Source of the DNA: Octopus sinensis
Taxonomy: Eukaryota
NCBI RefSeq assembly: GCF_006345805.1
Contig: NC_042998.1
Location: forward strand, 196,602,001-196,666,000
Direction of reading: 5' to 3'
Length of the DNA stretch: 64,000 nucleotides
The notes below the pieces were generated by a model. That model ran no database searches, had not been told where the DNA came from, and was given only the letters and a program-made list of their open reading frames with translations. Position 1 is the stretch's first letter; the number at the start of each line of letters is the position of its first letter. Positions 10,756 to 50,200 of the stretch are shown in pieces. A program made the position numbers and the translations under genes.

Positions 10756-10932
10756 CTTGAGGATGAGTCCATCTTTCAGCTGTTGTTTCATTCCTTGAAC
10801 TCCTTTGTGAATGATTTTTGTGATCATCTGTCTCAGTAGAGGCGCACTGTGTGGTATGAGTTACAGCTTGGCTAGGTCCAGATTCCAAAATATCAACATG
10901 CTGCTTATAACTTTTTAGACCATTCATTAAAG
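10756..10932 (-). CDS. CEP57: Module U1 exon B (177 nt, phase 1-1)
   Basis: Acceptor gatttctttccag|CT, donor CAAG|gtaaaa. Encodes (A)LMNGLKSYKQHVDILESGPSQAVTH...NETTAERWTHPQ. Confidence 0.88.
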
Positions 10933-10956
10933 CTGGAAAGAAATCAACAAAACATA

Positions 10957-11467
10957 CCGTAAATCCTCGAGTATAATCCGCATTTTCCCCAAAAATTTAA
11001 AGGTCAAAATCTCTAGTATGTACTATATACGAGGTTAAAAATGAAAAATATTTTCTAAGCAATGTCCAAGTCTCTATTTGCTGTCCGGCAATGTTTATTC
11101 AGACGCATTTTGTGATGTCGGGCGCGAAAATACCTTAAGCTAAGCCTAAAAGCAATGAAGTCATAAAAGAATCATCCATAACTTGCAGTAAGCAACATTT
11201 ATTAAACGTTATTACTGTTATTTCTTTATTTTCTGCGAACAAAATGCACAAAAAAGCTACACGTTTGTATTACGTTATATATACAATAATAATAAAGGAC
11301 GTTAGCGTATACATTTTTACAAACCAAGGACGTTATATAGACCTCCTTGACTCAAGTTAGAGAAGGGGTGCGTATTATACACAAGGTTTAGCGTTTTCAG
11401 AGGTACAGCTCCCTAAAAATCCACTGCGTATTATACACAAGGGCGAACTATACTCGAGGATTTACGG
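10957..11467. mobile_element. Tc1/mariner-pogo-type MITE
   Basis: Perfect 19-bp TIR ccgtaaatcctcgagtata / tatactcgaggatttacgg, flanked by TA. Confidence 0.85.
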
Positions 11468-12112
11468 TACGTTTGGATATAATATAATCTTTTCTACTTT
11501 AGGCGCAAGGCCCGAAATTTTGGGGGAGGGGGCCATGGTACTTAATTTATTGACCCTGAAAGAATGAAAGGCAAAGTTGACCATGACAGAATTTGAACTC
11601 AGAACGTAAAGACACACGAAATACACTAAGCATTTTGTCTGACATGCTAATGTTTCTGCCAACTTGCCACCTTAATAATAATCTTTTGTACTCCAGGCAC
11701 AACGCCCGAGACTTCGGGGAAGGGAGCCAGTCGATTAGATCGACCTCAGTATGCAACTGGTACTTAATTTATCGATCCCAAAAGGATGAACGGCAAAGTC
11801 AACCTTGGCAGAATTTGAACTTAGAACATAAAGACAGACGTGCCAAAATTTTTTTTGTGAATGAAATTGCCTGAAAATTCCCAGAAACTATTATTTTGTC
11901 CTAAATAACAACTGAAAAAAAATTTCATTGAAATCCGTTTGATAAAGATTGCATACGCATTAAGAACATGTTTCATTCTTTGATACAGATCATACACAAA
12001 TCACAATTTGTATCACAAGTATTTGTTTTACACCCTTACAAATTAAGGGTCAGTTTGAACAGACGATCAGCATGAATGGGTTAAAGTAATACAAAGATAG
12101 AGAATGGTTTAC

Positions 12113-12278
12113 CTTCTATGTTTGTTTCAGAAAAAGTGTAGACTGGTTTATCAGAAGTCTGATGATCATCGTTGATTGAAGGCTTTGTTGTTGGAAGTTT
12201 CTTGTAAGAACCAGTGCTGATATCAAAAATCTGATCTGAGTGTGGTCTGACATCACAACAGCTGGGAGGACTAAATAT
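12113..12278 (-). CDS. CEP57: Module U1 exon A (166 nt, phase 0-1)
   Basis: Acceptor ttttctttggtacag|ATA, donor ATAGAAG|gtaaacc. Encodes IFSPPSCC...DQIFDISTGSYKKLP...SDKPVYTFSETNIE. Confidence 0.88.
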
Positions 12279-12832
12279 CTGTACCAAAGAAAACAGAGAC
12301 TCATGTAACACAACAAAAACTGCACTGGAATAATAAGCCTTCCTTTCCTACATGCTTGGTCACATTTCGCTGAATGAAGGGAAACAACACAGAGCTGTGA
12401 GGACATTCTTCTGTCCTGCAAGGTACAAGGCAACCTCACTCATGTTGGTGCCACAATAAAATGTACCGAGTACAATCTCTAAAGCAGTTGACAGATTACA
12501 TTGTTGAGCAGACTCTTTTAGTCTTCTTAGGGGATGACTAAGTACGTTGGGGCCATAATAAAATGCACCCAGTACACTGTATAAAAAGTCTGGTATAAAG
12601 AAAAGGTTCCAGTGTAGAATTTATGCCAAAATAAAATCTACAGAGCAAGATATATATTTTGCACAATTTGTACTGAGTAATTCCATAATGAAGTTGAAAC
12701 AAACCTGAAAACACTTGGTCGTCTACTACTACTACTACTACCACCACCACCGTTGCCATGACTACTAGCGTTCCTAATCCTCAAATTGTCCCCAATCATG
12801 TCTAGGAGGGCAACTGCTCCTAATAAGTTTTT

Positions 12833-13210
12833 TATATATAAAGGATGGAAGTGGAAATAGTCCAGAAGTCTAAAACATTGCAATTTAAGAAGGAATTTAA
12901 TAAAAATGATTTTGAAAAAGAAGATATTACTGGTTTCAATGAATCTCATCAGTAAAAATTTTATTAAAAAAATGGAGTAAAAACAGTTTATCTTCCGTCT
13001 GGGGATCAAGAACATGTCTGGGGGTGGGGTCAAGAATGTCTTGATCCCCAGACAGATGACAAACTATTTTTACTTCAAATTTTAATAAGTTTTTACTGAT
13101 GAGATTCATCGAAACCAGTAATATCTTCTTTATATAATTTTTAAAATCATTTTTTATTAAATTCCTTCTTAAATTCTTGGACTTATTTCTGTGCTATTTC
13201 CACCTCCATC

Positions 13211-13220
<10 letters not shown>
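12833..13220. repeat. Fold-back element (about 180-bp arms, about 20-nt loop)
   Basis: aaggatgga...ctggggatcaagaacat / atgtcttgatccccag...tccatcctt, flanked by TA runs. Confidence 0.85.
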
Positions 13221-13278
<58 letters not shown>

Positions 13279-14882
13279 TCAGCAACAATTTAGATTCAAA
13301 TGAACATGGTACTTAATTTAGATGCACCAGAATTTTGTATGGTGTTATCCATAAAAATTTGCGAGGTGATTATAATAAAATGATGTAGTGCGAAACAATT
13401 GTACCAAATTACCGGAGTCATTCTTGTTGCTTATTTTTTAGTATATATATATATATACATACATATAGCTAGCTAGATGCAAGCCCATGATTCTGAGTTC
13501 AGTCCCACTGTGCAGCACCTTGGGCAAGAGTCTTCTATGCTCGCCCCAGGTCAATCAATGCCTTGTGAGTGAATTCGGAAGACAGAAATTATGTGGAAGT
13601 CTGTTGCATATATATGTGATTGTGTGTGTGTGTGTGTGTCTGTTACATTTTTGTGTCTGTTACATTTTTGTGTCTGCCCACTCTCCCCCTCACTGCTTCA
13701 CATCTGGTGTTAGTTGCTGATGTTCCCTTAACGTAGAGGTTCAGCAAAAGAGACAAACAAAATAAGGACCGAACTTAAAAAGAAAAAGAAGTATAGGAGT
13801 TGAGTTATTCAACTAAACCCTTTGAAGTGATGCCCCAGCATGGCCACAGTCCAATGACTGAAACATGTAAAAGAAGGTACCTTTTATCTTTTACTTTATC
13901 ACCATCATTTAACACCTGCCTTCCATGCTGGCATGGGTGAAACAGTTTGACAAGAGCTGGCCAGGCAGAAGCCTGCACCAAACTACTGTAACTGTTTCAG
14001 CAGGATGTCCTTAGACTGTGCCCATGCTGGAGGACACAAACACACCAACATTGGTTGTTAAATGGTGGGAGGGGGGGGGGGACAACCACAGACACAAATA
14101 CAATTCACACACTGTGCTTGAGGAGACCTATTGAGTCAAGTACATCAACATCAGAAATCAAATGGAAATTACATTTGTGATACCTGTGCCGGTGGCATGT
14201 AAAAAGCACCATCCGAACGTGGCCGATGTCAGTGCCACCTTGATTGGCTTCCGTGCTGTTGGCACGTAAAAAGCACGAACCGATTGTGACCATTGCCAGC
14301 CTCACATGGGATCTGTGTCGGTGGCATGTAAAAAGCACCATCCGAACGTGGCCGATGCCAGCGCCACCTTGACTGGCTTCTGTGCTGGTGACACGTAAAA
14401 GCACGAACCGATCATGGCCATTGCCAGCCTCGCATGGTACCTGTGTAGGTGGCATGTAAAACGCACCCACTACACTCACAGGGTGATTAGCATTAGGAAG
14501 GGCATCCAGCTGTAGAAACACTGGAGCCTGGCGCAGCCTCCTGGCTTCCCAGACCCCGGTCAAACCGTCCATCCCATGCTAGCATGGAAAACAGACGTTA
14601 AACGATGATGATGATATATATATACATATATATGTGTATAAATGATAGGCTTCTTACGGATTCTGTCTACTGAATCCACTCACAAGGTTTTGGTTAGCCT
14701 GGGACTATAGAAGACGCTTGCTCAAAGTGCTAAGCAGTAGGACTGAACCCAAAACCATGTGGCTGAGAAGCCAACTTCTTACCACACAGCCACTGGTTTC
14801 CAAAATATACATAATTACATGGGTTCTAAAACAGAGACAATTCTTGTAGCACAAATCAATGTTAAATCAACAGAATACTTAC

Positions 14883-14935
14883 TTGATCAGCCTTCTGTTT
14901 AGTGGCAGTCACTGATGTTCTTTTTCCTTCAGGTT
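14883..14935 (-). CDS. Module U2 exon C (53 nt, phase 1-0)
   Basis: Acceptor cttttatattacag|AA, donor CAA|gtaagtattc. Encodes (K)PEGKRTSVTATKQKADQ; homologous to the exon at 19476-19522. Confidence 0.8.
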
Positions 14936-14959
14936 CTGTAATATAAAAGTAGAGATTCA

Positions 14960-16509: not shown

Positions 16510-16683
16510 TACTCTGCTGAGGTGCTAAGCTTTCAAATGTCTCCTTCCCAGCCTTGTTTTTTGGGCAGTTTTTGTAAGTGTCTGCCTCAGAGAGGAGTTG
16601 CTTATTGCGACTCATTGCTAGATTAAGCTCAGATTCTAAATTCTTCATCTGCTTCTCAAAACTTCTCAAAGCAGTCATTAAAG
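16510..16683 (-). CDS. Module U2 exon B (174 nt, phase 1-1)
   Basis: Acceptor gatatctttccag|CT, donor AGTA|gtaagt. Encodes (A)LMTALRSFEKQMKNLESELNLAMSRNKQLLSEADTYKNCP...APQQS. Confidence 0.88.
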
Positions 16684-17333: not shown

Positions 17334-17490
17334 CTTGTGTTTTAGGTTTAGGAAAACCATAGACTGGTCTTTCAGAAAGTTGTTGAGAATCACTGGTCAG
17401 AGGCAGCTTCCTATAAGAACCGGTACTTATGTCATCAAATATCTGCTCTGAACCAGGTTGAAGATCAGAACTGTCAGAGAGATTAGCCAT
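17334..17490 (-). CDS. Module U2 exon A (157 nt, phase 0-1)
   Basis: Acceptor ttttctttggtacag|ATG (same as U1-A), donor CAAG|gtaaat. Encodes MANLSDSS...EQIFDDISTGSYRKLP...SERPVYGFPKPKTQ. Confidence 0.88.
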
Positions 17491-19475
17491 CTGTACCAAA
17501 GAAAATGGAAATAATACAGTATAGAGTGCTTCACAAAGATTGGTCCAGAAAATTCTAGACTCAAAAAAAAAAAAAAAAACTACTAAACATCTACAAATCT
17601 CAAATGAGACCCAAAATGAAGCCTGGATACTAAATCAGGCATAGAAGCTATAAAAACATCCAGACATCCTAGAACACATCCAAAGAAGGTCATATAAGTT
17701 ACAGGCAAGAAATCACTCACCAAAACGTCCCAACCTCTGAACCACAGAACTACTGTCTCCTCCCCACTTCCTCTAACACTCTTTTGTACCAATACTACAC
17801 TGACTACTACCTGGCTTCTGACCAATCAGGCACTGAAGACTCTCTCATCTCTCCAACTATGGAGCGTCAATACACCAAGATCCTGCACTATTCATTCCAC
17901 GCCATAAGCCCACGGGCATATGACGTAGTGGTTAAGAGTGCAGGCTACTAACCCCAAGATTCTGAGTTTGATTCTGAGTTACGTACCTCTGGCACAGGAG
18001 CCAGTCAGGCGGACATAGCACTGATCACGTACAAATGGTGCTTTTTACGTGCCACCGGCACAAGAGCCAGTCAGGGGGCACTGTATTGGCCATGTTAGGA
18101 TGGTGCTTTTTACGTGCCACCACAGCAAAAGAACCAGCCAAAGGGCACTGCATCAGCCACATTTGGATGGTGCTTTCCATGTGCCATCGGCACGAGCCAG
18201 TCAGGGGTCACTGCATCAGCCACATTTGGATGGTGCTTTTCATGTGTCACCAGCACCGGAGCCAGTCAGGTGGATCTGGCATCGACCGTTGTCTATTTTT
18301 AGTATTTTATTTTCTTTCCCTGCATGTGTTCTTCATTATTGATTTATTGGGAATCCAGCAGGGATTTCATTTAGGGCCCTGTGAGTGAATTCACTAGACG
18401 GAAACTGTGTGGAAGCCTGTTAGAGGGACTATACCTCTAACTCAAAGACCAAGATTGTTTACACACTGATAATGAATCTGTCTGAGGACCATGTTAAGGG
18501 GTCACATGTCTGTGGGATACACAGCCATTTAGGTAATCAGTCAATGTTTAGGTTTCTCAATTGATGGAACAACTGGAATGACCATCAAAACTGATGTGTT
18601 GTGGGGAGGGGGGGGTCTGTCTAATCTTTTTATCAAACTCTACCACAGCAGACAAATGATGTAGGATTTGAACTCACAAACTACTCCACTGCATTGTCTT
18701 CTAACTATTGGAAACTGAAAAGAATCATGAAATGGTGTTATGTGGAGACCCTGAATGTATCAAAATGCCTGAGTAAACCTAAGCAGAGTCTGCAACTTCT
18801 TGTGTATCACCAAGTTAGCAGCATCCAGGCTTCAGCCCCAGCTTATCTCAATTGTCATGATATTGTCCAAGATAACACCCGTGCTGGTGGCACATAAAGA
18901 GCATACTTTGAACATTGGGCCTCACAGAGGCAAAGAAGCTGAGTTCCTCTTGAGCGTTGGGCCACACGGAGGAAAAGTAGCTGACTTGCTTTTGAGTGTT
19001 GGGCCACACGGAGGTGAGGTGGCTGAGTTCCTTTCAAGCGTTGGGCCTCACAGAGGCAATGACCAAAGCATTTGGCATTATGTCCTGCTTGAGAAGACCC
19101 ATGAAGCTGAGCAAAATCACGGTCATGGCAGATACCAGTGTCATGCAAATTGGCACCCGTGCCGACGGCACGTAAACACACACTGGTGTCACCAAATAAT
19201 ACCTGTGCCAGTGGCATGTAAAAGCACCCATTACACTCTTGGAGTGTTTGGTGTTAGGAAGGGCAACCAGCCATAGAAAACTATGCTAAATCAGGCTGGA
19301 GTCTGGTGAGCCTTCCACCGTGGCAGCCCGGTCAAACCGTCCAATGGACATTAAATGACGATGATGATAAATACTAATTGACTGAGTTGATTGAGAGCGG
19401 TTTGTTCCGTTCTCCAAAAGAAAACTCCGGGAAATGATTTAAGTAGAGAAATTACTAAATTAATAAAATACTTAC

Positions 19476-19522
19476 TTCAACCTGTTTAGCAGCAATCACT
19501 GATGACATCTTTTGTTGAGGTT
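19476..19522 (-). CDS. Module U3 exon C (47 nt, phase 1-0)
   Basis: Acceptor ccttttttattgcag|AA, donor GAA|gtaagtatt. Encodes (E)PQQKMSSVIAAKQVE. Confidence 0.8.
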
Positions 19523-20540
19523 CTGCAATAAAAAAGGATTCCATTCTTAAAAAAATACTGGCTCTCAACGATTCATATCCAGACATTCAAGACCCATCAC
19601 ATTCATAGGAATCATGGAAAAAATGGGATTAAAGCAATGTTTCTGGACACAGGTTTGGTTGTGTGGTGGACAAATTTACTTTGCTATCATGGAGTTCAAG
19701 TTCAATCCCATTGTAGGACATCTCCAGGAAATGTCTTTTACAAAATTATTTGGGAGCGTAAGGAGACATAAATACTCATTACTTTCAAGAAAAAACTGCC
19801 TTATTTAGTGAGGTAGGGAGTAAACAATGTTCTTCTAAAAACCAACCCCAATAGAAAGGCATCCATTTTGTAGACAGACGACAAAAGGAGGAGAATGTTG
19901 AAGTAATGAATTTAAATGTTGAATCATTCTTGCTGTCATCGTCCTAATCAACATTGGTTTAGATGATGATGATGATGATAAAATGATTAGAGCAAAAATG
20001 ATTTAACATTTAACCCTTTAGCATTTAAACCGGCCAAAAGTATTCTGCTTGTTTTATGTTCAAACTGGCCAGATCTGGTCTCTCACACCAACCCTACAAT
20101 ATTGTTTAAAAAATTAACAGCTACCTCATCAAAATCTCATAGCTACAAGATAATGCATGATTAGTTCAAAACTATTTGGATAAAGAAGCATTAATTTTGG
20201 CAGAATAATGCGAACACTAAAGGGTTAAATTCATTGCTTCAAAAAGAGGAGAATGTTGAGTGTGGCTGTTGCCAGTACCGCCTGACTGGCCTCGTGCCAG
20301 TGGCACGTAAAAGCACCCACTACACTCTCAGAGTAGTTGGCATTAGGAAGGGCATCCAGCTGTAGAAACTCTGCTAGATCAGATTGGAGCCTGGTGCAGC
20401 CATCTGGTTCGCCAGCCCTCAGTGAAACCGTCCAACCCATGCCAGCATGGAAAGCAGACATTAAACGATGATGATAATGATGATGACACACACATGCATT
20501 TATATAAATGAAAGGCAATTATCAATATATATCTTATTAC

Positions 20541-20590
20541 CTTGAAGATGGGTCAATCTTTTAACTGTTGTTTCATTTTTCCCCTTTCTT
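20541..20590 (-). pseudogene. Orphan 3' half of an extra exon-B copy, abutting a LINE 3' end
   Basis: Encodes ...KGKNETTVKRLTHLQ G|gtaataag. The donor-side intron resembles that of U3-B (gtaataagcatattgattgataactg). The 5' half and native acceptor are absent, and a TAG lies upstream in this frame. Confidence 0.7.
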
Positions 20591-22584: not shown

Positions 22585-22597
22585 TATATATATATAT

Positions 22598-22644
<47 letters not shown>

Positions 22645-22753
22645 ATATATTGTATTTATGTGTATATATATATATATATATGTATTTATGTGTATATATA
22701 TATATATATATATAATATATGTATTTATGTGTATATATATATATATATGTATT

Positions 22754-22800
<47 letters not shown>

Positions 22801-22803
22801 ATT

Positions 22804-22842
<39 letters not shown>

Positions 22843-22936
22843 TTATGTGTATATATATATATATATATATAATATATATATGTATTTATGTGTATATATA
22901 TATATATATGTATGTGTATATATATATATGTATGTG

Positions 22937-22972
<36 letters not shown>

Positions 22973-22974
22973 TG

Positions 22975-23005
<31 letters not shown>

Positions 23006-23130
23006 TATATATATATATGTGATGATGATGATGATGATGATGATGATGTGTATATATATGTATGTGTATATATATATATATATTATATATATATATATGC
23101 ATGTGTGTATATATATATATATATATATAA
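22585..23130. repeat. Compound (TA)n/(TG)n/(GAT)n microsatellite
   Basis: Directly visible low-complexity tract; the source of several spurious long ORFs. Confidence 0.95.
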
Positions 23131-23893: not shown

Positions 23894-24067
23894 CTTGAGG
23901 ATGGGTCAATCCTTTGACTGTTGTATCATTTCCTGAATTGTCTTGGGAATAGTTTCCGTAAGCATCTGGCTCAGAGATGCAGTGTTTACTATGACTCATA
24001 GCTTGGCTATGATCAACTTCTTCATTTTCTAAATCTTCCTCAAAGCTTCTCAGAGCAGCTCGAAATT
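23894..24067 (-). CDS. Module U3 exon B (174 nt, phase 1-1)
   Basis: Acceptor (t)n-cag|AA, donor CAAG|gtaata. Encodes (E)FRAALRSFEEDLENEEVDHSQAMSH...NDTTVKGLTHPQ. Confidence 0.85.
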
Positions 24068-25562: not shown

Positions 25563-25632
25563 CTTGTACTTGATTTTCGAGAGAAGCGTCCAAAGGTATT
25601 TCAATGCTAGAACTACCTGAAAGACTAGACAT
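25563..25632 (-). CDS. Module U3 exon A (70 nt, phase 0-1), begins with ATG
   Basis: Acceptor ttgttttcttcgatacag|ATG, donor CAAG|gtaaatcattct. Encodes MSSLSGSSSIEIPLDASLENQVQ; both ends resemble U2-A, with an internal deletion. Confidence 0.75.
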
Positions 25633-26772: not shown

Positions 26773-29700
26773 GCTTGAAGGATCAGGTAAAATATACCCT
26801 TATAAACGCAAAAAAAGTGGCCCATCCATAAAGGTATTTTACCTGATTACATAGCTATTCTTCTGCAATCAAGATTTTCTTCATTTCTAAGATGCCAACT
26901 CACTCAGTGCTTCAGGGTTTGTTCATAAAGATGTTCTAACAATCGAAAAAATATAAATACCTATTCATTGAGTTGCATTTATCAACTGTCCTAATACACA
27001 CACACACACACAAGGCATACCTACACATACCTGCGACTTTGTTTCCTCATAACTTTTAGAAAAATAGATATTTTTTAAAATGAAATCTTCTACAGATACC
27101 TCTCAGATGGTGTAGATTACTATAATATCGGAATTTAATGTGAAAAATACGTATGTGTACGTTGGGCACGTCTACATACATACTGAGTTACACAAATTTT
27201 TCGAAACTTCAGTTTCATTTTCTAGATACACGTGATGTGTATCAGTTATGTATTTTTACGCGCCCAACAAACTTTTTTCTATTCATATTGAATTCCGATA
27301 TAACTGTAATCTTCACCAACTAGAATATATTTAAAGAAAATTTCAGGAAAAAAAAAAGAAAACAAATTTCAGGAAGTTGAGAAAACAAAGAAACGTGGGA
27401 ATTTTCTGAAATTCTTCTCTCCACTCTCGAAAAAAATTTTTTTTTTCTCACAACAATTTCTGATATAACTGAAACAGGTATTCTTTCGGTTTGACTCGAC
27501 GATACGTTTTTGTGAAAATTCATTTTAAAATATCCATTTTTCTGAAAGTTATGAAGAAATAAAGTCGGAGACACATTAGTGGAGATATGCCTCTATATAA
27601 TATGTATTTCTTTACTACCCACAAGGGGCTAAACACAGAGGGGACAAACAAGGACAGACAAAGGGATTAAGTCGATTACATCGACCCCAGTGCGTAACTG
27701 GTACTTAATTTATCGACCCCGAAAGGATGAAAGGCAAAGTCGACCTCGGCCTATGCCTCTATATAATATGAGCTGAGAAAGGATTGAAAAATCGCTTTGG
27801 CCCCTGTTTGGCTGTGGATTTGTAATCCTTTTATATTGACATCACGCGAAAATGCTCCCACTACCCTTTATAAAGTGGTTGCAAAAACCAAATGACACGG
27901 AACAAGCACCAGTCTGCGACAGTAGTGGATGCTAATGGGAAATGATTGAAATTATGATGACCCGTCCAACCCATGCCAGCGTGGAAGACGCACATGAAAT
28001 GACGACGATCTCTGTTTACATACACAAGAAGGAACATAGGAACTCAGTGCTTCAAAGTTGTTAGTAAGAAAGTTTTTAAATTGCAACTGATTTTTCAGAG
28101 AGAGAAAAAAAGAAGAAAACGGCGGGAGAATTGAGGAAAAACAGAATATAAAATAATAATACGCCATAAGAAGGAGCAGATAAGGAAGATGGATGTAGTA
28201 AATGTTTCTATTGTGAATGTTGGGAATAATTTCATGATTGGAGACGATGTTTCCAAGGAGATTTCAAACCGAGCAAAGAATATAATAACAATACTTACAA
28301 TTAAGGTAGAATAAGGTAATTACTTATAAACTTTGTGTCTGGAATATAGGAATATGTTCATAGCGTCAAAATGTCGTATATTTGTCATTTCAATGAGAAA
28401 TTTAGTCCACATTTAGTCTAAATATGTTTTGCCAACGGAGGATATTAACAACATAACAACTTCACTGAAACTTATTTATTTACGCCTGTTGCTAAGTCGA
28501 TTACCTCCCCTCTCTTTCTTCGCTTCTCACATTTACCTCCCCTGATTATTAGCATCATTTTTGGCGCCATTTCGTTTCTAGGCCCCCAACTACAGGGAAA
28601 GACGTATTTTTCTTTGTCAAAAATATGTATTTTCCAGGTCCAAAACGGAAATTCTTCTCGTACATGGAAAGTCACAGTTTAATGAAATTTTTAAAACTTC
28701 AAACGATAAACTAATCAAACACCTTTAAATAACTGTTCCAATGGGTTTTCATTCATTTCAACGGTGTCAATAGCACCAATTTGAATTGAATCTCTCTAAT
28801 TATAAAGCTGAAGTTGTCTGTGTGTGGCAGGTTAGGTAGCCTTCAACTAACACTATCTTCTCCGAGACCCTGCAGCACAAGTTGACCAAAATTGAGAGCA
28901 TGATAGAAGGAGGTTTGCTCTTCCTTTCGTAGAAGAAAAAATTCAAATCAGACCATGTTAACACCAAAAATTACTTACATCAAAAAGGTGCTTTTTTTTC
29001 TATGAAAATCCCTATTTTTTACGATGTTTTGACTGCTGTGTCGTCATCTTTCGGTGTATTTCAACCAGAGTTTGATGACTTGAATAAAAATTCCCAAGAT
29101 AAATGTGTCTGTTAGAATAATTCCGTTGTTTACTTTCCACACTGAATGTCCATGAAAAGAATAAAAAATATGGAATTGGATGTGTCTTGGTGACAAAACA
29201 CATCACCTGCAGAACTGACGTCACAGGAACTAATTTAAATGAACGAACACTAATGAAAATGGGTCGTTTCTCGATTATGTCTGTTATATCCTTCCATACT
29301 TAAGGTTGCTGTTTGTATTACACAATAGGTTATGTGTTGCACGACAGTGAACATGGATTTTAAGCGGGAAAGGGAAGGCTTCTTTTGTGCGGTTTAATTA
29401 ATGAAATAAATATACAGTTATTTAAAATACGATAGGCATACAATACCTCAATATCATCATATTTGTTTTTTTCCATTCTAAACTGACTTGAACGATGTTT
29501 TAGGTACAGAGGCCCTCTCTGTTGGCAATTCCTTTAGTCGCCCCTTGCAATACGTAGATATATGGTGTGCCTGTTGAAAAACTCGGACCCGTTTGGCTTG
29601 GTATATAGGCTTTCAGGAAAATAAACGATGTTATACGAATATAAATACAAAAATACAATAATAATAATAACCGGACATAACAACAGGCTTCATTTCCACA

Positions 29701-31653
29701 CACGCCAGCTGAATTCAAATCGTCCCCAGTCGAAAGACGCCTGTTGTTATGCCCTGTTATTATTATTTTTATTGTATTTTTGTATTTATATTCGTGTAAC
29801 ATTGTCTGTTTTTCCATCCTTGTTTTCGTACACATTCGATGCTTTTTTCCAAGGAATCTAATGCTCTTAGTTTAGTTTTTTCCTTGGGGCTGGCCAGATT
29901 GGAGCAATCTCAAGATTAATCAGCCGAAATTGCGAGGATGATCCGGTTCTTGACTGAGGATAAAAGGCTTCGAATGACCTGTCCTTGTTTTTTAGTATCG
30001 TCTATCTGGATGTTTTGTTGTCCCTTTTTGTATCACCTAGCTGTCCAGATGTTTTGCGTTCTTGTCCCATTTTGTATTTTATATATATATCATCATATAT
30101 ATATATATATATATAGTGGTGTACATACACTTTGTTCTCATATATATATGTATATGTTTGTGTGTCTGTGTTTGTCCCCCACAACATCACCTGACAACCG
30201 ATGCTGGTGTGTTTACATCCCCATAACTTAGCGGTTTGGCAAAAGAGACCGATAGAATAAGTACTAGGGTTACAAAGAATAAGTCCTGGGGTCGATTTGC
30301 TCGACTAAAGGCAATGCTCCAGCATGGCCACAATCAAATGACTGAAACAAATAAAAGAATATTAAACATAACTTGCCCAGGAACTCTTTGATACCACCTC
30401 ATACATGGAAGGTACACGCGTCCATGGAATACTCAACCACTTGCACGTTAATTTCATGAGCAGGCTGGTTCCTTGATCAACTGAAACCCTCACCATTGTA
30501 ACCAAGGGAATGCCAGTTTTGTTTTTAATCATCAGGTGTGGCTGTGTGGTTAGGAGTTCATTTCCCTGATGTCGTCCGCTATAGTCTCGGGTTGATCAAA
30601 GTGGATTTGGTAGATGAAAACTGAAAGAAGCCTCTGTGTGGGTGTCTTTGAGTCTATGTTTGTCCCCACCCGACCACTTGACAACCGGTGTTGGTGGGTT
30701 TACAGCCCCATAACTTAGAGGTTCAGCAAAAGGAACTGATAAAAAAAATACTAGGCTTAAAAAGATCATGTACTGCGGTTGATCCACTTCGTCTAACAGT
30801 TCTAGTGACTGAAGCAAGCAACAGATAAAAGGGTAAAAGACCATTTAGGGTGTCAAACAGGATGGCAACAGAAATATAGCTGGAGTTATTGTTCCTCGGC
30901 TGTGATATAAAATATATTTTAAGAACGAATCGAAATCGAACCTCATCCAACGACTGGCACCCATGCCAACCTCCCTTCATTGGACACTAAACTCTGCTTG
31001 TGAAGACCTGTTGGGGCAAGTGAAATTGAAATTGAACCAAATCCTATGACTGGCACCCGGCCGTTGCCAGTGCCACTGGACTGGCTCTTGTGCAGGTGGC
31101 AAGTAAAGAAACACTGTTTCGACCCTGTGCTTGAGATGACCTATTGAGTCAAGTACATCAACATCAAAAATCAATGGAAATTGTAGTTGTGATACCTGTG
31201 CCGGTTGCATGTAAAAAACACCATCCAAACGTGGCCGATGCCAGTGCCACCTTGACTGGCTTCTGTGCTGGTGGCACGTATAAAGCACCAACCGATCATG
31301 GCCATTGCCAGTCTCGCCTGGCACCTATGCTGGTGGCACATAAAAAGCATCCACTACACTCATGAAGTGGTTGGCGTCCAACTATAGAAACTCTGCCAGA
31401 TCAAGATTGGAGCCTGGCGCAGCCATCTGGTTCACCAGTCCTCAGTCAAAATCATCCAACCCATGCTAGAATGGAAAGCGGACGTTAAATGATGATGATG
31501 ATTTTAAGAAGGAATTGAAATGAAGGTGTTTGGTGTTCAATTCCCTGTGTTTCTAACGCTGCAATTATCAAAATAATTGAGATTTCTTTTTCATGTTATA
31601 AAGAATTTACAAATCAAAAGTAAAAATACGTATTTATTAATTGCTGATATTAC

Positions 31654-31815
31654 TTTCCAGAAGCACCAGTCTTTCAGCTGTTCTTTCCTTCCTTGCGTTC
31701 TTTCATAAACGTTCTTTGAAAGCATCGAGTTCTTCATTATCAATCAAAGCTTGCCTATGTTTGGTTTTAGCATGTTTTAAATCTTCGACAAAGTTTTTGA
31801 GAAGATCTTCAAATT
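31654..31815 (-). CDS. Module U4 exon B (162 nt, phase 1-1) with an in-frame TGA at 31703-31705 (pseudo-exon or poison exon)
   Basis: Acceptor gctcatgtctgtccag|AA, donor GAAA|gtaata. Encodes (E)FEDLLKNFVEDLKHAKTKHRQALIDNEELDAFKERL*KNARKERTAERLVLLE; the frame continues past the stop and aligns to the other B exons. Confidence 0.7.
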
Positions 31816-34099: not shown

Positions 34100-34151
34100 C
34101 AAGCACATTTTCTGAAAGAATGCTTTTATGGGGTGACACAGCAGGAAACTC
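34100..34151 (-). CDS. Module U4 exon A (52 nt, phase 0-1)
   Basis: Strong acceptor ctttttctgtcttctttgcttcag|GAG, donor TTG|gtaagc. Encodes EFPAVSPHKSILSENVL; the downstream intron start is homologous to those of U5-A and U6-A. Confidence 0.72.
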
Positions 34152-36215: not shown

Positions 36216-36253
36216 CTCTTCAGGGATAGAATAAAATGCTTCTTCTTCAGCTT
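36216..36253 (-). CDS. Module U5 exon C (38 nt, phase 1-0)
   Basis: Acceptor cttttatattacag|AA (identical to U2-C), donor GAG|gtaata. Encodes (E)AEEEAFYSIPEE. Confidence 0.75.
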
Positions 36254-38315: not shown

Positions 38316-39668
38316 TATAAATTTATGCAGATACACACACACATTGTGATACAGAGATGTGTTATCTGTTTCCCTACTCTGATTCCTTATAGTGTTATTA
38401 GTAAATTAATTTTGGTCTGTTTTATACACACACAAGTTCAATTAAAAATGCAGTAATATGCACAATTCTTCTCAACTCCAATTCTGTGATTTATTTCAGG
38501 TGAACATTAACCAATGATTCATTAAAAGATTCATTAGTCTGTTGTAGCTCTGGCTGAGGAGACACAACAATGTTGAAACACCAGGGTTCTCAAAGATCCC
38601 CGATGCTAATGAATCAAATGTGTTATGAAAGAAGAAGCAGTTCTCCAAATAATGAAATACAGCAGTGATTAGCATATTCATGTTCCTGTGATCAATGACA
38701 GGCCTGCCTGACTGGCTCCTGTACCGGTGGCACATAAAAAGCACCCACCACACTCTTGGAGTGGTTGGCGTTAGGAAGGGCATCTAGCTGTAAAAACTCT
38801 GCCAGATCAAGATTGGAGCCTGGTGCAGCTACTGGCTCTCCAGACCTCAGTCAAACCGTCCAACCCATGCTAGCATGGAAAGCAGACGTTAAATGATGAT
38901 GATGATGTGTTTCCCGAAATGTTAAATGTAAATATAATTATTGTCAAGCATAATCATTGACAACGTCACCTTGCTGGCACATGTGCCAGTGACATGTGTA
39001 AAACAACATTCGAGAGTGGTCGTTGCCAGTGCCGCTGGACTGGCTCCCATGCAGGTGGCACGTAAAAAACACCTTTTGACCGTGGTCGTTGCCAGTAGAA
39101 TGTAAAAAGCACCCACTACACTCTCAGAGTGGTTGGCATTAGGAAGGGCATCCAGCTGTAGAAACTTTGCCAGATCAGATTGGGGCCTTGTGCAGCCTCC
39201 TGGCTTCTCAGTCCTCAATCAAACTGTCCAACCCATGCCAGCATGGAAAGCGGATGTTAAATGATGATGATGATGATGAATTTACTGATTCTTGCAGTTC
39301 CCATGCACAGGATGAATTTTTAAGAAGTAACCGAAAAAAAAACCCATCTTTTGTTGCATTTTGTCCCTAATTAAGCAATTTTCAGATTAATTTGTTGTGA
39401 GAGGGGGTTTCCTTTTCATGTTTTATGTTACACTGCCCCTCCCCAAAGAAGCCATTTACAATAAATGCCATTACCGTGTGGTACATATACAACTGTTTGA
39501 TCCATCACATCTGAACGCTCTTCGAAATCAGACAGGCTTTCTTCATAATCTTTATCTCCTAAAAACAACTCTTCTTTCAATTCTGGAAGCACATCAACAA
39601 AAGAAATGTTTAGATATAAAGTTTAAAAGAAATCATTGTTAGATATTTAACACATTTTACAATAATGG

Positions 39669-40465: not shown

Positions 40466-40624
40466 CTGGTATATATCGTGTCCTATCCATTAGGCCCACT
40501 GTGGAAACGTCCCCTTCAGCTGCTAGATAAGACGAGTACCATTTACTTTGATTCACATTCCTCTTAAGTTCAGCTTCTTCTAATTCTAACTCTTCCTCAA
40601 AGCTTTTTATAGCATTTAGAAACT
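40466..40624 (-). CDS. Module U5 exon B (159 nt, phase 1-1)
   Basis: Acceptor gatgtcttttcag|AG, donor ATACCAG|gtaata. Encodes (E)FLNAIKSFEEELELEEAELKRNVNQSKWYSSYLAAEGDVSTVGLMDRTRYIP. Confidence 0.82.
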
Positions 40625-41597: not shown

Positions 41598-41775
41598 CTT
41601 GTATTTCAAGTTGAGTAGAAATGCTCAATCGGTTATCAGGAGCTGGCAAGTCTATAGTATGAAGCTGTTGAGAAAGTTCCAAAGAAGGTTCCGAAGGAGG
41701 CGCTCGGGAAGTTCTCACAGGATGTGCTCGAGAAGTTCTCACAGGTGGAGGTCTGAGACAACATAATAAACGATA
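41598..41775 (-). CDS. Module U5 exon A (178 nt, phase 0-1)
   Basis: Acceptor ttttccttcgtttatttcag|TAT, donor ATACAAG|gtaaacc. Encodes YRLLCCLRPPPVRTSRAHPVRTSRAPP...NRLSISTQLEIQ. Confidence 0.72.
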
Positions 41776-43388: not shown

Positions 43389-43432
43389 TCCCTTTGGAAT
43401 ACGGGGTAACATTGCCGCAATATCTTCAGGAT
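43389..43432 (-). CDS. Module U6 exon C (44 nt, phase 1-0)
   Basis: Acceptor ccccttttacattgcag|AT, donor GGA|gtaagtattct. Encodes (D)PEDIAAMLPRIPKG; downstream intron (43305-43350) resembles that of U5-C (36140-36190). Confidence 0.75.
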
Positions 43433-44165: not shown

Positions 44166-46044
44166 AAAAATAATAATAATAAATAGAATAGGAAGCCAGA
44201 CATAGTTTTAATTGAGAAAGAAAACAAACTATGCTGGATCTTAGATATTTTAAAATTTACAGGAGGGGGGGTAACTTGAGGTGAGAAATTGATTGGGAGA
44301 CGTTTTGGGGCGCTACAGTGGTTGCTTTGCTGTGAAAATGGGGATTTTATTGATTTGGGGGGACACTTTGGGGTCTAGATTGGACACCTTTTGCCCGATT
44401 TCAATCAAATTTTCAACATGGTAAAGTGGAAACGGATTTGTAATTTAAGCGCGGGAAAATGGGTTCGAAATTTTGAAAATTAAGGCAAGATTTATGAAGT
44501 TGAAAAAAATTTCTCATTTTTATGTATTTTTGCCTTTTATTTTTTATTGTTTAAAGTTTTCATTTTTTCTTAAAGAAATTTACAGCTGCATGTAGCCCGT
44601 GTTTAGAGCTTTCATTTGCATGGTCAATCGTCGAACAATTCCCAAAATAATTACTAAATTTAACAAAGAAATCCACTTTCTTCTTATTTTTAATCGCTCA
44701 AATAGTGGCACGTACAAAAGGCAAATGTGCTTTCCGTTGTCACTGCCTGATAATTATGATTGATCTTTCAAAATATTTTCTTTCTCAACTTACTCAAGAT
44801 CTTTTGTTTTTTATAAATGGGAGAGAGATAGATAGAGAAAGACAGAGAGTAAGAGAAAGCGAGGGAGAGTCTGAGAGAAAGGAAGAGTAAGAGAGTGGGA
44901 AAGTGAGAGAGAAAAGAGAGAAAAACAAAGAGGGAGAATGTGGCGATAAGAAACAGAAAGGAAGCAACAGAAAGTAACAACCACACCCTCACCCGTGCGT
45001 AGAGCGGGTCACCTTAAGCTAGTAAGTTAATAGAAAGATAGAGCTGTCAGGGCTTCCCTCTAATTCTTTAGTGATAAATGTGATATGTTGTAAACCAAAT
45101 GACAGAGAGGCACTTAGCACTACACAATATTACCTAGCGCTGGAGGTGATCTCAAAATTGATTTTCTCTTCACTATATCCATCGAGGGTTTCAGGCGAGG
45201 TTCACGGCGGAGCACTGGTAAAATATAAATAAAATATACTTTTTAGATATAACCAGGTTGTTGTTTGCTGCTACACTGCAGGTAAAAATATTTGTTAAAC
45301 ATGCACATACATCTGCATAAATGATTAAAGTGAAGGTCATTTTTTTAAAGTCTGTATTCAAACGAGGTCTTTGCCAGTGCCGCTGGACTGGCCCCTGAGC
45401 AGGTGGCACGTAAAAAGCACCATTTGGGCGTGGCCATTGCCAGTACCACCAAACTGGCCCTCGTGCCGGTGGCACGTAAAAGCACCCACTACACTCTCGG
45501 AGTGGTTGGCGTTTGGAAGGGCATCGAGCTGTAGAAACTCTGCCAGATCAGATTGGAGCCTGATGCAGCCTCATGGCTTCCCAGACACCAGTCGAACTGT
45601 CCAACCCATGCTAGCATGGAAAACGGACGTTAAACGATGATGATGATGATGTCTTGTCTATATGTTGAAAGTCTCTCAAACACACACACACAAACAATCT
45701 CACTAAAATAACTAAATATATATTATATATTCATATAAAACGAAAAAATAAATATGCCCTTTAAAAGCCTAGCCAGGCTCATGGGCCCGGTTTCCCAGTT
45801 TCAATGGCGTATGTGTTCCCCAGCTGGATGGGACACCAGTCCATCGCAGCGTTACTCATTTTTGCCAGCTGAGTGGACTGGAGCAACATGAAAGGAGGTG
45901 TTTTGCTCAAGAACACAATGCATCATCCGGTCCAGGAATCGAAACCACAATCTTACGATCATGGTGCTGACACCCTAACCACTAAGCCACACGCCTCCAC
46001 ATATATTCATATAGTCACCCGTATTGAAAATCAGGGAATGACTC

Positions 46045-47118
46045 ACGAAGTGGTCATACCCAGTAACTGGTGTAGCAGCACCATAATCAACTGCTACAAA
46101 GGTAAAGGTGACGCCTTAGATAGAAATAATTACAGAGGTATCAAATTGTTGAATCAGGAGATGAAAGTTACAGAGAGGGTCACAGCCCAACTAATTAGGG
46201 ATAGGGTTACTCTAGATGAGCTGCAGTTTGGTTTTGTGTCAGGGAGAAGCACCACTGATGCTATATTTTTGGTAAGGTGTAGGAGAAATATACAGCCTAA
46301 GACAAACCTTTGTACTGGGCTTTTGTTGACTTGGAGAAAGCATTTGACAGGGTCCCTTGATCCCTTATCTGGTGATCAATGCAGAAACTAGGGATAAATG
46401 AATGGTTGGTAAGAGCTGTAGAACCCATGTATAGGGACACTACCAGTAAGGTGAGAGTTGGCAGCAAGTATGGCAAAGAATTCAGGGTACAAGTAGGGGT
46501 TCACCAAGGATCGGTCCTCAGCCTCCTTTTGTTCATCATAGTCCTCCAGGCAAAAACAGAGGAATTCAAGACAGGCTGCCCCTAGGAGTTTCTCTATGCT
46601 GACGATCTTGTTTTTATAGCTGAATCACTACCAGAACTAGAGAAGAAGTTCCAGGTACGGAAACAAGGTCTAGAATTAAATGGCCTAAGAGTTAACCAAA
46701 AACCAAAGTCTTAGTTAGTAGGAAGGCAGACAAATCACAAATCCCTTCAGTTAGATGGCCCTGCTTAATCTATAGAAAAGGCATAGGTAGAAACTCCATA
46801 AGATGCACCTGGTACATCCTATAAGCTATGAACATATAAGAGGTGTAGCAATATCAGGGCAAGGTTAAGAGGGACAATAACTTTTGTATGTGGAAGGTGC
46901 ACAGGTACAATAAACAGTGAAAATGTAGAGAAAACAGATGCCATCATCTGTCAGGTGAGTAAACTAGAGGTAGTAGACAGCTTCTGTTATCTGGGTGACC
47001 AAGTAAGTAGAGGAGGTGGATGCTCCAAGAGCATAGCTGCGAGAATAAGATTAGGCTGGGCAAAGTTCAAAGAGCTCCTACCTCTGCTGGTAACAAAGGA
47101 CCTTTCCTCAGAGGGAAG
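46045..47118 (+). mobile_element. Decayed RTE LINE reverse transcriptase region
   Basis: NYRGIKLL, FGFVSGRSTTDAIF, VGVHQGSVLS, LYADDL and VDSFCYLGD motifs with frameshifts. Confidence 0.88.
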
Positions 47119-47227
47119 GGCATATTGTATGATGCCTTTGTCAGGGGTTTTCTCTAATTCTCTAGTGATAAATGTGATATGTTGTAAACCAAATAAAAGA
47201 GAGGCTCTTAGCAATACATAACATTAC

Positions 47228-47281
47228 CTGGTATACTGCCCAAAGGTCTCGTTAAATCGAATTCTGCATCATCATCATCAT
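47228..47281 (-). CDS. Module U6 exon B, shortened (54 nt, phase 1-1)
   Basis: Acceptor ttatatattccag|AT, donor ATACCAG|gtaat (same end as U5-B). Encodes (D)DDDDAEFDLTRPLGSIP. Confidence 0.65.
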
Positions 47282-47971
47282 CTGGAATATATAAACAATA
47301 CATACCTTATAGATATGATTATAACGACATTTTAAAGCATTTATACTGAAACAGACATGGTGTCCTCCAAAAATGTATGCACACTTTAGAGGAATGCCAA
47401 TGAGAAATGTTCCAGAAGACTATGGATGTTGATGAGCTCCACAAAGGCACAGGAGTAGAGCAGGAGTGGCTGTGTGGTAAGTAGCTTGCTTACCAACCAC
47501 ATGGTTCGAGGTTCAGTCCCACTGCATGGCATCTTGGGCAAGTGTCTTCTACTATAGCCTCGGGCTGACCAAAGCCTTGTGAGTGGATTTGATAGATGGA
47601 AACTGAAAGAAGCCCGTCGAATATATGCATCATCATCATCGTTTAGCGTCTGCTTTCCATGCTAGCATGGGTTGGACGGTTCGACCGGGGTCTGGAAAGC
47701 CAGGAGGCTGCACCAGGCCCAGTCTGATCTGGCAATGTTTCTACGGCTGGATGCCCTTCCTAACGCCAACCACTCCATGAGTGTAGTGAGTGCTTTTTAC
47801 GTGTCACCGGCACAGGTGCCAGACGAGGCTGGCAAATGGCCATGATCGGATGGTGCTTTTTACGTGCCACCAGTATGGAGGCCAGGCGAGGCTGGCAACG
47901 GCCACGATCGGATGCTGCTTTTTACGTGCCACTGGCATGGAGGCAGTCGGGGTGGCGCTAGGAAGTCGGGG

Positions 47972-48011
<40 letters not shown>

Positions 48012-48410
48012 ATGTCTATGTTTGTCCCCCCAACATAGCTTGATAACCGATGCTGGTGTGTTTGCGTCCCCATAACTTAGCGGTAGAATAAGTACTAGGC
48101 TTACAAAGAATAAGTCCTGGGGTCAATTTGTTCGACTAAAGGCGGTGCTCCAGCATGGCCGCAGTCAAATGACTGAAACAAGTAAAAGAGAGGAAGAGAA
48201 GTCAAGAAAGGATACTAAGAATGTATTGAGAAACTAGTCACGAGACAGGAATTTAGAAATCAAGCATTCATCGCATTTTATAAAGTTGTCGTTAGAAAAG
48301 TTGCATTTCAAGAAATGATTATTGCTTTTAATAAAAACGATCTGAGGAATTTTTCACTGGTCTGGATTTGGTTACAGTTGCAGGCAGGCTTGTAAGACAG
48401 GTATGATCAA

Positions 48411-48646
48411 GGCGGCAAGCTGGCAGAAACGTTAGCACGCCGGGCGAAATGCTTAGCGGTATTTCGTCTGCCGTTAGGTTGTGAGTTCAGATTTCGCCGA
48501 GGTCGACTTTACCTTTCATCCTTTCGGGGTCGATTAAATAAGTACCAGTTACGCACTGGGGTCGATGTAATCCGTCGACTTAATACCTATGTCTGTCCTT
48601 GTTTGTCCCCTCTATGTTTAGCCCCTTGTGGGTAATAAAGAAATAG
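48411..48646 (+). mobile_element. tRNA-derived SINE with a Meta-domain-like centre, representative copy
   Basis: Head ggcggcaagctggcagaaacgttagc, centre gtcgactttacctttcatcctttcggggtcgat, tail aaagaaat; TSD ggtatgatc. Other copies at 3490-3690, 16856-17087, 27605-27751, 35470-36110, 53600-54005, 56555-56790, 58240-58560. The Meta assignment is from memory. Confidence 0.85.
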
Positions 48647-50130
48647 GTATGATCCTTGTAAAACAGGTTTGATCCATTATGATCCTTCAGTGGGTGATTC
48701 TCTGCAGGTTTTTGCTTTAACATCAATTACTTTGACACTCAAATCAGAGATCAATTGAGAAGTTTCCAGAAATTCCCAGTGCAAGGCCTGATTTAGTTCA
48801 GATAGTAGGGTAAGACAGAGATCAGCAGCTGAAAGGATCAATTATGTAGTTGAATCATTTCTCAGCATTCCAGAGTCCAGAATTTTAATGCATATGTTTT
48901 TGGCTTGCCATTGTCAGGGAGTTAGAGGTGCATTAAATAAAAACCTGATGTTTATTGCAATCAACCCATTGTATCAAAGCAAAAAAGAAAAAAATGAGTT
49001 ATTGGCTTTCATACAAAAGATGGCTGATGTGATCATCAAGGCATCACTCAGTCTTAGAAAAGAGACCTGTTTTTATGGTATATTTCATCCACACATGAAG
49101 CCGTGACAATTTTGTTCCATCTAACCAGCCCACCTATGTGTACCTTTCCTTCATTGGACACTAAACTCTGCTTGCGAAGACCTGTTGAGGCAAAGAGGAA
49201 TTCCCATGGGAAACCTGTCTTAAATTTCTCTGTTATTGTCTGGAAGACTGTTACCAAAACCCTTATAAACTCTCACCAGCATACTAAATTAATAGCTGTA
49301 CTTATTGTTAACTAGCATCTGTGCTAGTGGAGTGCTAAGAACACCATCCAAGTGTGATCATTGCCAGAGCAGCTGACTGGCTTCCATGCCGGTGGCACGT
49401 AAAAATCACCATTCAAGCATGATTATTACCAGTGTCACCTTACTGGTACTTGTGCTGGTGGCACGAGAAAAAACGTTCGAGCGAGGTTGTTGCCAGTGCC
49501 GCTAACTGGCTCCTGTGCAGGTGGCCGTTGCCAGTACCACCTGACTGGCCCTCGTGTTGGTGGCATGTAAAAGCACCCATTACACTCTCGGAGTCGTTGG
49601 CATTAGGAAGGGCATCCTGCTGTAGAAACTCTGCCAGATCAGGATTGGAGCCTGGTGCAGCCATCTGATTCGCCAGTCCTCAGTCAAATCATCCAACTCA
49701 TGCTAGCATGGAAAGCGGATGTTAAATGATGGTGATGATGATGATAACCATCCATATAATTGAAACAAAGGAGAACCAATGTCTTAGTATAAAATATGTG
49801 TGCATGTGTCCATGTGTGTTTGTATGTGAGTGTGTGTGCATGCATATGTGTGTGAGTGTGTGCATGTGTGTGTGAGTGTGTGCGTGTGTGCATGAGTGTG
49901 TGTGTGTGTGTGTGCGTGTGTGCACATGTGTGTGTGAGTGTGTGCATGTGTTCATGTATATAGATGTATATGTACAAAAGTGTGTAATTGTTTGTGTGAT
50001 CATTATGGAATCAAAAGAACGATGGGTTTATCCTATCGTTAGTCAATGAATGAAATAAAATAGAAAGATGTCTACCAAAGTAAATGTAGACAGTACAATA
50101 ATGAAAATATAATGGAAAAGAATGGTTTAC

Positions 50131-50200
50131 CTTCTATCTTAACTGTGGGAGTAGCACCATGCAAATCGTCGTCTTCGAAATCAGCATAATCATAAGGGGA
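50131..50200 (-). CDS. Module U6 exon A (70 nt, phase 0-1)
   Basis: Acceptor tttttctgcttcctttgctccag|TCC, donor ATAGAAG|gtaaaccattct (as in U1-A). Encodes SPYDYADFEDDDLHGATPTVKIE. Confidence 0.75.

Follow-up and report, generated by a model that had tools for sequence, protein, structure and literature searches.

Tandem copies of the CEP57 N-terminal exon block in Octopus sinensis: a probable three-module CEP57 and a module-only reading frame beside it

The stretch analyzed here, referred to as the window, comprises 64,000 nucleotides (nt) of Octopus sinensis contig NC_042998.1 (positions 196,602,001 to 196,666,000 of the forward strand, RefSeq assembly GCF_006345805.1). Protein look-ups and Pfam searches identified LOC115227230 as the CEP57 family gene of the window, located on the minus strand, and an array of small repeated exons lies upstream of its conserved core. 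A first-pass annotation had described this array, between positions 10756 and 50200, as six A-B-C exon triplets (units U1 to U6) in front of a single CEP57-like core. These end points coincide exactly with where U1B ends (3′) and U6A begins (5′), and all five B-exon motifs quoted in that annotation as well as the U2 A-exon peptide were recovered, on the minus strand only and at no other site of the window. Two reading frames have to be distinguished, that of CEP57 itself and a frame running through U6, U5 and U4, which will be referred to as the upstream frame. The exons and associated elements are as follows (window coordinates; a slash marks an exon boundary; AF2, AlphaFold2):

50131..50200 (-), U6A, A-type exon, phase 0 to 1, acceptor ttgctccag/, donor GAAG/gtaaac; second coding exon of the putative upstream gene

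47228..47281 (-), U6x, extra B-type exon, phase 1 to 1, encoding DDDDDAEFDLTRPLGSIP; donor flank homologous to B exons; present in the O. vulgaris protein

45134..45214 (-), U6B, diverged B-type exon, phase 1 to 1; B DNA profile at its 3′ end (E 1.5e-3); 93% identical to the O. vulgaris protein

43389..43432 (-), U6C, short C exon, phase 1 to 0, acceptor ttttacattgcag, donor GGA/gtaagtatt

41598..41775 (-), U5A, A-type exon with internal PVRTSRA repeat; open in the homologous frame only (stops 0/4/3)

40466..40624 (-), U5B, B exon, EFLNAIKSFEEEL..., predicted helix; quoted motif; AF2 helix in the O. vulgaris orthologue

39475..39582 (-), U5x, second B-type exon of U5, B-type acceptor ttttgttgatgtgcttccag; present in the O. 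vulgaris protein

36216..36253 (-), U5C, short C exon; also an exon of CEP57 isoform X1, there in a non-homologous frame

34100..34151 (-), U4A, A-type exon; also an exon of isoform X1

31703..31815 (-), U4B, B exon closing the upstream frame (...DAFKERL, TGA 31705-31703); the O. vulgaris 311-residue product ends here

31633..31638 (-), AATAAA, candidate polyadenylation signal of the upstream gene, 65 nt past the U4B stop

28505..28558 (-), coding part of the CEP57 5′ exon of the O. vulgaris model, MMLIIRGGKCEKRRKRGE, between U4 and U3; region 86% identical to O. bimaculoides DNA

25563..25632 (-), U3A, first codon the ATG of RefSeq isoform X2; acceptor and donor reading

23894..24067 (-), U3B, EFRAALRSFEEDL...; quoted motif; AF2 helix at residues 16-50

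20504..20577 (-), B-tail relic between U3B and U3C, NETTVKRLTHLQ/gtaata; B profile E 1.3e-13; in no annotated protein

19476..19522 (-), U3C; splice reading, annotated protein

17334..17490 (-), U2A, beginning with the ATG that is the start of O. bimaculoides XP_014778171; splice reading

16510..16683 (-), U2B, the sole B exon still fitting the PINC consensus; PINC profile 20.0 bits

14883..14935 (-), U2C; splice reading, annotated protein

12113..12278 (-), U1A, beginning with ATA, no in-frame ATG; splice reading

10756..10932 (-), U1B, ALMNGLKSYKQHV..., degenerate PINC-type exon; PINC profile 3.3 bits, inside the shuffle range

9773..10020 (-), long C exon of U1, Cep57_CLD positions 60-143; Pfam, C profile at its 3′ end

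7748..7822 (-), core exon, end of the CLD coiled coil; splice model

5805..6019 (-), core exon, linker and start of Cep57_MT_bd; splice model and Pfam

1266..1410 (-), core exon, Cep57_MT_bd; six-frame Pfam scan and splice model

outside the window (-), last coding exon, 1.1-1.4 kb before the window start (positions 8634-8858 of the locus extension L005)

A splice model starting at the ATG of U3A and passing through U3, U2 and U1 into the three core exons of the window matches XP_036356561.1, the RefSeq isoform X2 of 644 amino acids, along its full length with 100% identity. Both Pfam families characteristic of CEP57 were detected in this protein by profile search, the comparison that had been proposed for the spliced product, and both matches lie above the gathering score. 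Cep57_CLD (PF14073) reached 53 bits (cut-off 28) at residues 283-461, covering profile positions 1-175, and Cep57_MT_bd (PF06657) reached 39.7 bits (gathering score 31.3) at residues 498-566, C-terminal to the CLD. The CLD match begins at U1B, and a second, weaker stretch is also present. The C-terminal domain furthermore matches the CEP57 chains 4L0R and 8IBH of the PDB at about 3e-8. Six-frame scans of the entire 2.72-Gb assembly with both Pfam models detected Cep57_CLD at window positions 9764-10024 (38.8 bits, derived from exon 9773-10020 alone) and a weak Cep57_MT_bd match at 1275-1409, and yielded no second genomic site above either cut-off. On the basis of these domain matches and of the PINC motif at U2B described below, LOC115227230 is classified as a true CEP57. 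Public databases title these octopus proteins "uncharacterized" or "hypothetical", and a full-text literature search for CEP57 in octopus gave no paper.

The repeated exons share not only their motifs but also their splice contexts. Six A exons are present, each following an acceptor of the type ...ctttggtacag in phase 0 and ending in phase 1. The A donor AAG/gtaaa(c/t) was found as previously read in five of the six units, the exception being U4 with CTTG/gtaagc. The five quoted B exons begin and end in phase 1 and match each other in pairwise BLASTP with E values of 3e-4 to 2e-11, except for U4B, which at that level matches only U3B (E 3e-4; U5B versus U3B, 1e-6). In a tree of the B exons, largely unresolved apart from two groupings, U3B, U4B and U5B cluster with 86/90 support. 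When a protein profile was built from the five B exons, it revealed no sixth B exon with the shared motif, the B-type exons of U6 being detectable only by DNA profile and via the O. vulgaris protein. The B DNA profile found two copies outside the model, U6B and the B-tail relic at 20504-20577. The latter is conserved in O. bimaculoides (L007 17875-17949) and is probably the remnant of one further unit.

Short C exons of 38-53 nt occur in four units (U2, U3, U5 and U6), running from phase 1 to phase 0 and ending in the donor /gtaagtatt or /gtaata; the C acceptor given by the first-pass annotation, of the ttttatattacag type, is present in all four. A C-context profile built from these units found the 3′ end of the CLD exon of U1, which had been left outside the model, at E 1.4e-4, and the 3′ end of the CLD exon in O. 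bimaculoides at E 7.9e-15. The long exon 9773-10020 is the C exon of U1. Since the profile of the short C exons and their flanks matches its 3′ end, with the same phases and donor, the short C exons are cut-down copies of the long CLD exon. For U4 no C exon was found by any profile; a candidate at the 30900 acceptor was rejected, having an in-frame stop at the fifth codon and no donor. Two B-type exons apiece are present in U6 (47228-47281 and 45134-45214) and in U5 (40466-40624 and 39475-39582). With second B exons in U5 and U6 and no C exon in U4, the order is A,B,(B),C, so that the array of triplets stands, but neither the strict A,B,C order nor the count of 17 exons originally proposed; we count 19 exons and one relic. 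As A exons lead from phase 0 to 1, B exons from 1 to 1 and C exons from 1 to 0, A+B+C forms a (0,0) cassette, and stacked units remain in frame. The parallel drawn earlier between the A/B junction of U2 and that of vertebrate CEP57 held on alignment to real homologues.

Comparing exon bodies with their intron flanks gave opposite pictures for the two halves of the array. Among U1 to U3, B exons align with z scores of 14-23 compared to -1.5 to 8 for the flanks (for U1B versus U3B, 22.7 in the exon and -0.3 and 2.7 in the flanks). In U4 to U6 it is the flanks that resemble each other, much more closely than the exon bodies do (z 8-13 versus about 0); examples are the 80 nt downstream of 34100, 41598, 50131, 36216 and 43389 (-). 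This suggests fast, indel-rich change of the coding parts of the upstream units with conservation of their splicing signals.

In O. sinensis, O. bimaculoides (XP_014778168/169) and O. vulgaris (CAI9716914-6), annotated isoforms have the reading U3-U2-U1-core in one frame. In U2A and U3A the acceptor is immediately followed by an ATG. U1A lacks an in-frame ATG and is therefore translatable only from an upstream unit. At the U2C/U1A junction (12279-12284, -), isoform X2 has two more residues (VQ) than isoform X1, which would require an acceptor 6 nt upstream ending in TG, not AG. In comparison with O. bimaculoides, the ratio of nonsynonymous to synonymous substitution rates (dN/dS, omega) was 0.25 for U2, 0.23 for the CLD exon plus core and 0.59 for U3; single exons gave 0.08 (U2B), 0.07 (U1A) and 1.58 (U1B). 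For U3 to U1 together, dN/dS against O. vulgaris was 0.40 (P 0.006). More than one module in the coding sequence, as the first-pass annotation had claimed, is thus borne out by U3-U2-U1, whereas a protein with six modules is not supported, U4 being devoid of a C exon and carrying a TGA in U4B.

To place the array in a wider context, a full HMMER search of 1.84 billion representatives was performed, yielding 79 relatives. Matches to the U2 A+B module number three in every full-length Octopus protein, two in Argonauta and one in each other significantly matched representative; the latter include oyster, chiton, Arion, Babylonia, Dreissena, Lingula, an ascidian and a vertebrate-type sequence. The nearest non-octopod sequence, P0015 on a transcript-sized contig, is 36% identical and contains one module and a CLD of 137 bits. 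With one module match per mollusc or brachiopod CEP57 compared to three or two in octopods, the array is not an ordinary mollusc feature. The ordinary mollusc CEP57s examined are single-module proteins, and the proposal of a lineage-specific N-terminal amplification agrees well with these counts.

It had further been proposed that up to six diverged docking helices are encoded. A PINC profile was constructed from 20 non-octopod CEP57s, and 500 shuffles served as control (best score 6.0 bits). Among the B exons of the window, U2B alone was clearly recognized (20.0 bits, positions 1-39; Argonauta U2B, 23.8 bits), while U1B (3.3), U3B (1.4), U5B (1.0) and U4B (-0.8) remained inside the shuffle range, so the six docking helices are not sustained. 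Centriole localisation of human CEP57 and its binding to the PACT domain of pericentrin require the PINC region (residues 68-103; PMC6389942), and PINC has been modelled as a parallel dimer docking PACT-calmodulin (PMC11321043). By analogy, U2B may represent the working pericentrin anchor. AF2 models of the CEP57 protein contain helices at residues 16-50 (U3B), 147-187 (U2B) and 278-300 (U1B), followed by the CLD coiled coil (340-454) and the microtubule-binding helices (496-567). In the O. vulgaris orthologue of the upstream protein, helices were predicted at residues 148-191 (U5B, with a per-residue confidence (pLDDT) of about 90), 221-236 (U5x) and 265-310 (the end of U4A plus U4B). Outside these helices the models are disordered.

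The spliced U6-U5 peptide retrieved two O. vulgaris proteins, CAI9716918.1 (284 residues) and CAI9716917.1 (311 residues), at E 2e-97, both titled "hypothetical predicted protein"; U6A is 87% identical to residues 10-32 of CAI9716918.1. The 311-residue product is composed of MACCGATSA followed by U6A, U6x, U6B, U6C, U5A, U5B, U5x, U5C, U4A and U4B and ends in ...DAFKERL. In O. vulgaris it is called as a gene of its own, ending 3.1 kb before the CEP57 gene call. The corresponding ATG exon of O. sinensis is conserved letter for letter 5.6 kb past the window end (extended coordinates 69634-69660, L006), and the frame is intact over 307 codons up to the TGA at 31705-31703, followed by AATAAA at 31638-31633. 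All eight upstream exons tested are open in the homologous frame only, with 1-7 stops in the other frames of most of them, a pattern that 20,000 shuffles or windows drawn at random from the genome never matched (P < 5e-5). With the homologous frame alone being open in eight exons, the upstream exons are not simple wreckage. Sequence identity between O. sinensis and O. vulgaris is about 93% throughout the region. For the upstream frame, dS was 0.074 and dN 0.026, giving an omega of 0.35 (binomial P 0.0035); the sole indel between the two species is a multiple of three, and start, splice sites, stop and AATAAA are conserved in both. These data argue for an open frame kept by purifying selection.

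No Pfam family matches the upstream protein at an E value below 0.16, and the CEP57 families are not among the matches. Its similarity to XP_036356561.1 is nevertheless detected by BLASTP (E 6e-5) and is collinear over 180 residues. Together with the shared splice phases, the flank z scores of 8-13 and the B-exon tree, this establishes the descent of the upstream frame from the N-terminal exons of CEP57. Going by these sequence relationships, its product is a derivative of CEP57 exons and should not be filed as CEP57.

RefSeq isoform X1 of CEP57 starts with MYHT/KLKKKHFILSLKR/SFLLCHPIKAFFQKMCL/MSSLSG, representing U5x, U5C and U4A in a non-homologous frame joined to U3A; its ATG at 39484-39486 lies within U5x and is used in another frame. 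The first 34 residues of X1 are thus encoded by exons of the upstream frame read differently. The U4A-U3A join of X1 is the sole annotated junction from the upstream block to CEP57, and across it the homologous frame stops after two codons. The N-terminus of X1 looks like a longest-open-reading-frame choice on a bridging transcript and not like a real N-terminus.

Taken together, the exon comparisons demonstrate, at the level of the genomic sequence, repeated tandem duplication of a phase-symmetric block, with three copies in CEP57, three or more diverged copies in a second constrained frame, and one PINC retained. We consider it likely that the locus holds two neighbouring minus-strand frames, a lineage-specific three-module CEP57 and a separate upstream module-only frame, both made of tandem copies of the CEP57 5′ exon block. 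In this block the A exon would correspond to the disordered N-terminus, the B exon to the PINC-type helix opening the localisation domain, and the C exon to the tail of the next exon; a block of phase (0,0) would allow copies to stack in frame. CEP57 would start between U4 and U3, read U3-U2-U1 and continue into one coiled-coil localisation domain and one microtubule-binding domain, resulting in three helices, set apart by disordered linkers about 90 residues long, in front of a normal body. U2B would dimerise and dock pericentrin PACT-calmodulin at the centriole, as in human CEP57. U1B, adjoining the coiled coil, is degenerate and fast-evolving, and U3 is an acidic add-on under weaker constraint; U3 and U1B might serve as spacers or weak helices. 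The upstream frame, presumably a separate transcription unit, would comprise the ATG exon, U6 (A,B,B,C), U5 (A,B,B,C) and U4 (A,B), ending with the stop in U4B and AATAAA. Its product would be acidic and mostly disordered, with two or three B-exon helices, no localisation coiled coil and no microtubule-binding domain, and may thus have acquired a new or regulatory role.

Several observations weigh against this reading. All exon joins are taken from annotation models, and a 260-residue junction query against a collection of 5.8 billion proteins found no transcript-derived fragments across U3C/U2A or U2C/U1A. The dN/dS values are derived from 31-34 substitutions, and overall confidence in the AF2 models is low (mean pLDDT 47-53). 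The upstream frame is present as a protein in neither the O. sinensis nor the O. bimaculoides annotation, nor could it be detected in the O. bimaculoides assembly over the 13 kb preceding U3A, a stretch interrupted by N gaps; the 10 kb upstream in this species align with the window in transposon pieces only and contain N gaps and a mariner-like fragment. Finally, since isoform X1 joins U5x-U5C-U4A to U3A, some transcripts may run from the upstream block into CEP57, and the two frames are maybe not fully separate as transcription units.

The missing O. sinensis RefSeq protein, the lack of a Pfam match and the negative result in the gapped O. bimaculoides region might be explained if U4 to U6 were decaying duplication relics, at most untranslated 5′ exons of CEP57 with no protein of their own. 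The use of U5C and U4A outside the homologous frame in X1, and exon bodies diverged past DNA alignment while their splice flanks are kept, would also be in accordance with decay. We nevertheless regard this explanation as unlikely, as relics would not be expected to retain the homologous frame in eight of eight tested exons, an omega significantly below 1, a frame-preserving indel and, in two species about 7% diverged, a still intact set of ATG exon, splice sites, stop and AATAAA. The frame test, the O. vulgaris protein and the dN/dS analysis all speak against U4 to U6 being dead relics.

Slightly less probable still appears a single gene with five or six modules in series, in which U4 is skipped (U5C-U3A) or U4A is joined to U3B, maybe in a tissue-restricted manner. 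With all units being (0,0) cassettes, both joins would be in frame, the upstream exons remain coding-competent, and X1 does connect U5x, U5C and U4A with U3A. However, no such join occurs in annotated proteins of up to 992 residues, and the only one annotated, U4A-U3A, disrupts the homologous frame. Moreover, the TGA in U4B is conserved and followed by AATAAA, O. vulgaris has a separate gene call there, and a 5′ exon lying between U4 and U3 belongs to CEP57 itself.

Mutual exclusion is common among tandem exon duplicates, and the ATGs opening U2A and U3A, as well as the N-terminal isoforms that follow from the starts of XP_014778171 (O. bimaculoides) at the U2A ATG and of one O. vulgaris model inside U3B, would suit alternative 5′ cassettes selected by splicing or promoters with one module per protein; this is highly improbable, as annotated isoforms keep their units in series and none joins U3C or U2C straight to the core, U1A is strongly constrained (omega 0.07) though it has no ATG, and Argonauta reads two units in series.

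One might speculate that the upstream frame is a young gene, maintained by selection and built solely of duplicated CEP57 N-terminal exons, whose product acts within the docking system of CEP57, perhaps regulating CEP57-pericentrin assembly or competing with it in soluble form, or that a tissue-specific in-frame join gives a five- or six-helix scaffold. We regard this proposal as doubtful. If true, either version would represent a natural experiment in changed valency of the linker between centriole and pericentriolar material.

Several further elements surround the array. A tandem unit of 62-69 bp (…TTTTTACGTGCCACCGGCAC…) within a dispersed repeat of about 300 bp, present in both orientations, dominates the self-comparison of the window. 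Example sites are:

672-837, 62-69-bp tandem unit
7314-7438, 62-69-bp tandem unit
8982-9221, 62-69-bp tandem unit
14260-14466, 62-69-bp tandem unit
17979-18270, 62-69-bp tandem unit
47791-47944, 62-69-bp tandem unit
62278-62463, 62-69-bp tandem unit

Upstream of the array, the window contains a mariner-like transposase fragment (58846-59172, +) and a reverse-transcriptase-like open frame (57053-57475, -); O. bimaculoides has a similar mariner fragment upstream of its gene as well (L007, about 8280-8800). A (TA)n tract of about 545 bp (22585-23129) is present in the intron separating U3B from U3C. An Rfam scan of the window gave no match. In O. vulgaris the locus is flanked upstream by a 530-residue product on the opposite strand and downstream by a gene with a LigB domain (PF02900) (L010 1-9523 (-), L009 48729-48899 (+)).

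CEP57 ties the centriole wall to pericentrin via one short PINC helix, which is single in every other animal homologue examined. In octopods the module is stacked two or three times, the conserved PINC is parted from the localisation domain, and a putative module-only gene lies alongside. The locus would therefore provide a natural series (one, two or three modules, and modules without a body) for relating the number and spacing of PINC helices to pericentrin docking and centriole engagement, and a clean case of exon-block duplication giving rise to a new gene as well as lengthening a protein.

The octopus protein shares with human CEP57 and CEP57L1 the domains Cep57_CLD and Cep57_MT_bd in the same order as well as PINC, located at U2B, and its A/B exon junction lies at the equivalent place in a vertebrate-type homologue. 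It differs in having three N-terminal modules instead of one, and its PINC is separated by about 130 residues (U2C, U1A and the degenerate U1B) from the rest of the localisation domain. The CLD score is also far lower, reaching 53 bits in octopus and 137 bits in the nearest non-octopod homologue. Homologous A+B module and core are present in Crassostrea gigas (XP_011413926), Liolophura (XP_064617980), Babylonia (XP_076444588), Dreissena (XP_052240323), Arion (A0A0B7AP13) and Lingula (XP_013403341), with one module match each. Argonauta hians (GAB1598605.1, 544 residues) likewise has U2-like and U1-like modules in series ahead of the core, but is devoid of U3, and no significant match to U3-U6 was found in the 10 kb upstream. 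The Argonauta CEP57 intron after the CLD exon carries an inverted copy of an A-type exon (L008 16300-16401 (-); tblastn E 4e-10, DNA profile E 3.6e-5). Outside the CEP57 family, PINC pericentrin anchors are known from Ppc89 of S. pombe, SAS-6 of Drosophila and Spc42 of S. cerevisiae, in which a dimerising helix docking PACT-calmodulin is part of otherwise unrelated scaffolds (PMC11321043). The upstream octopus protein resembles these in presenting short predicted helices without a CEP57 body, although its helices lie below detection by the PINC profile.

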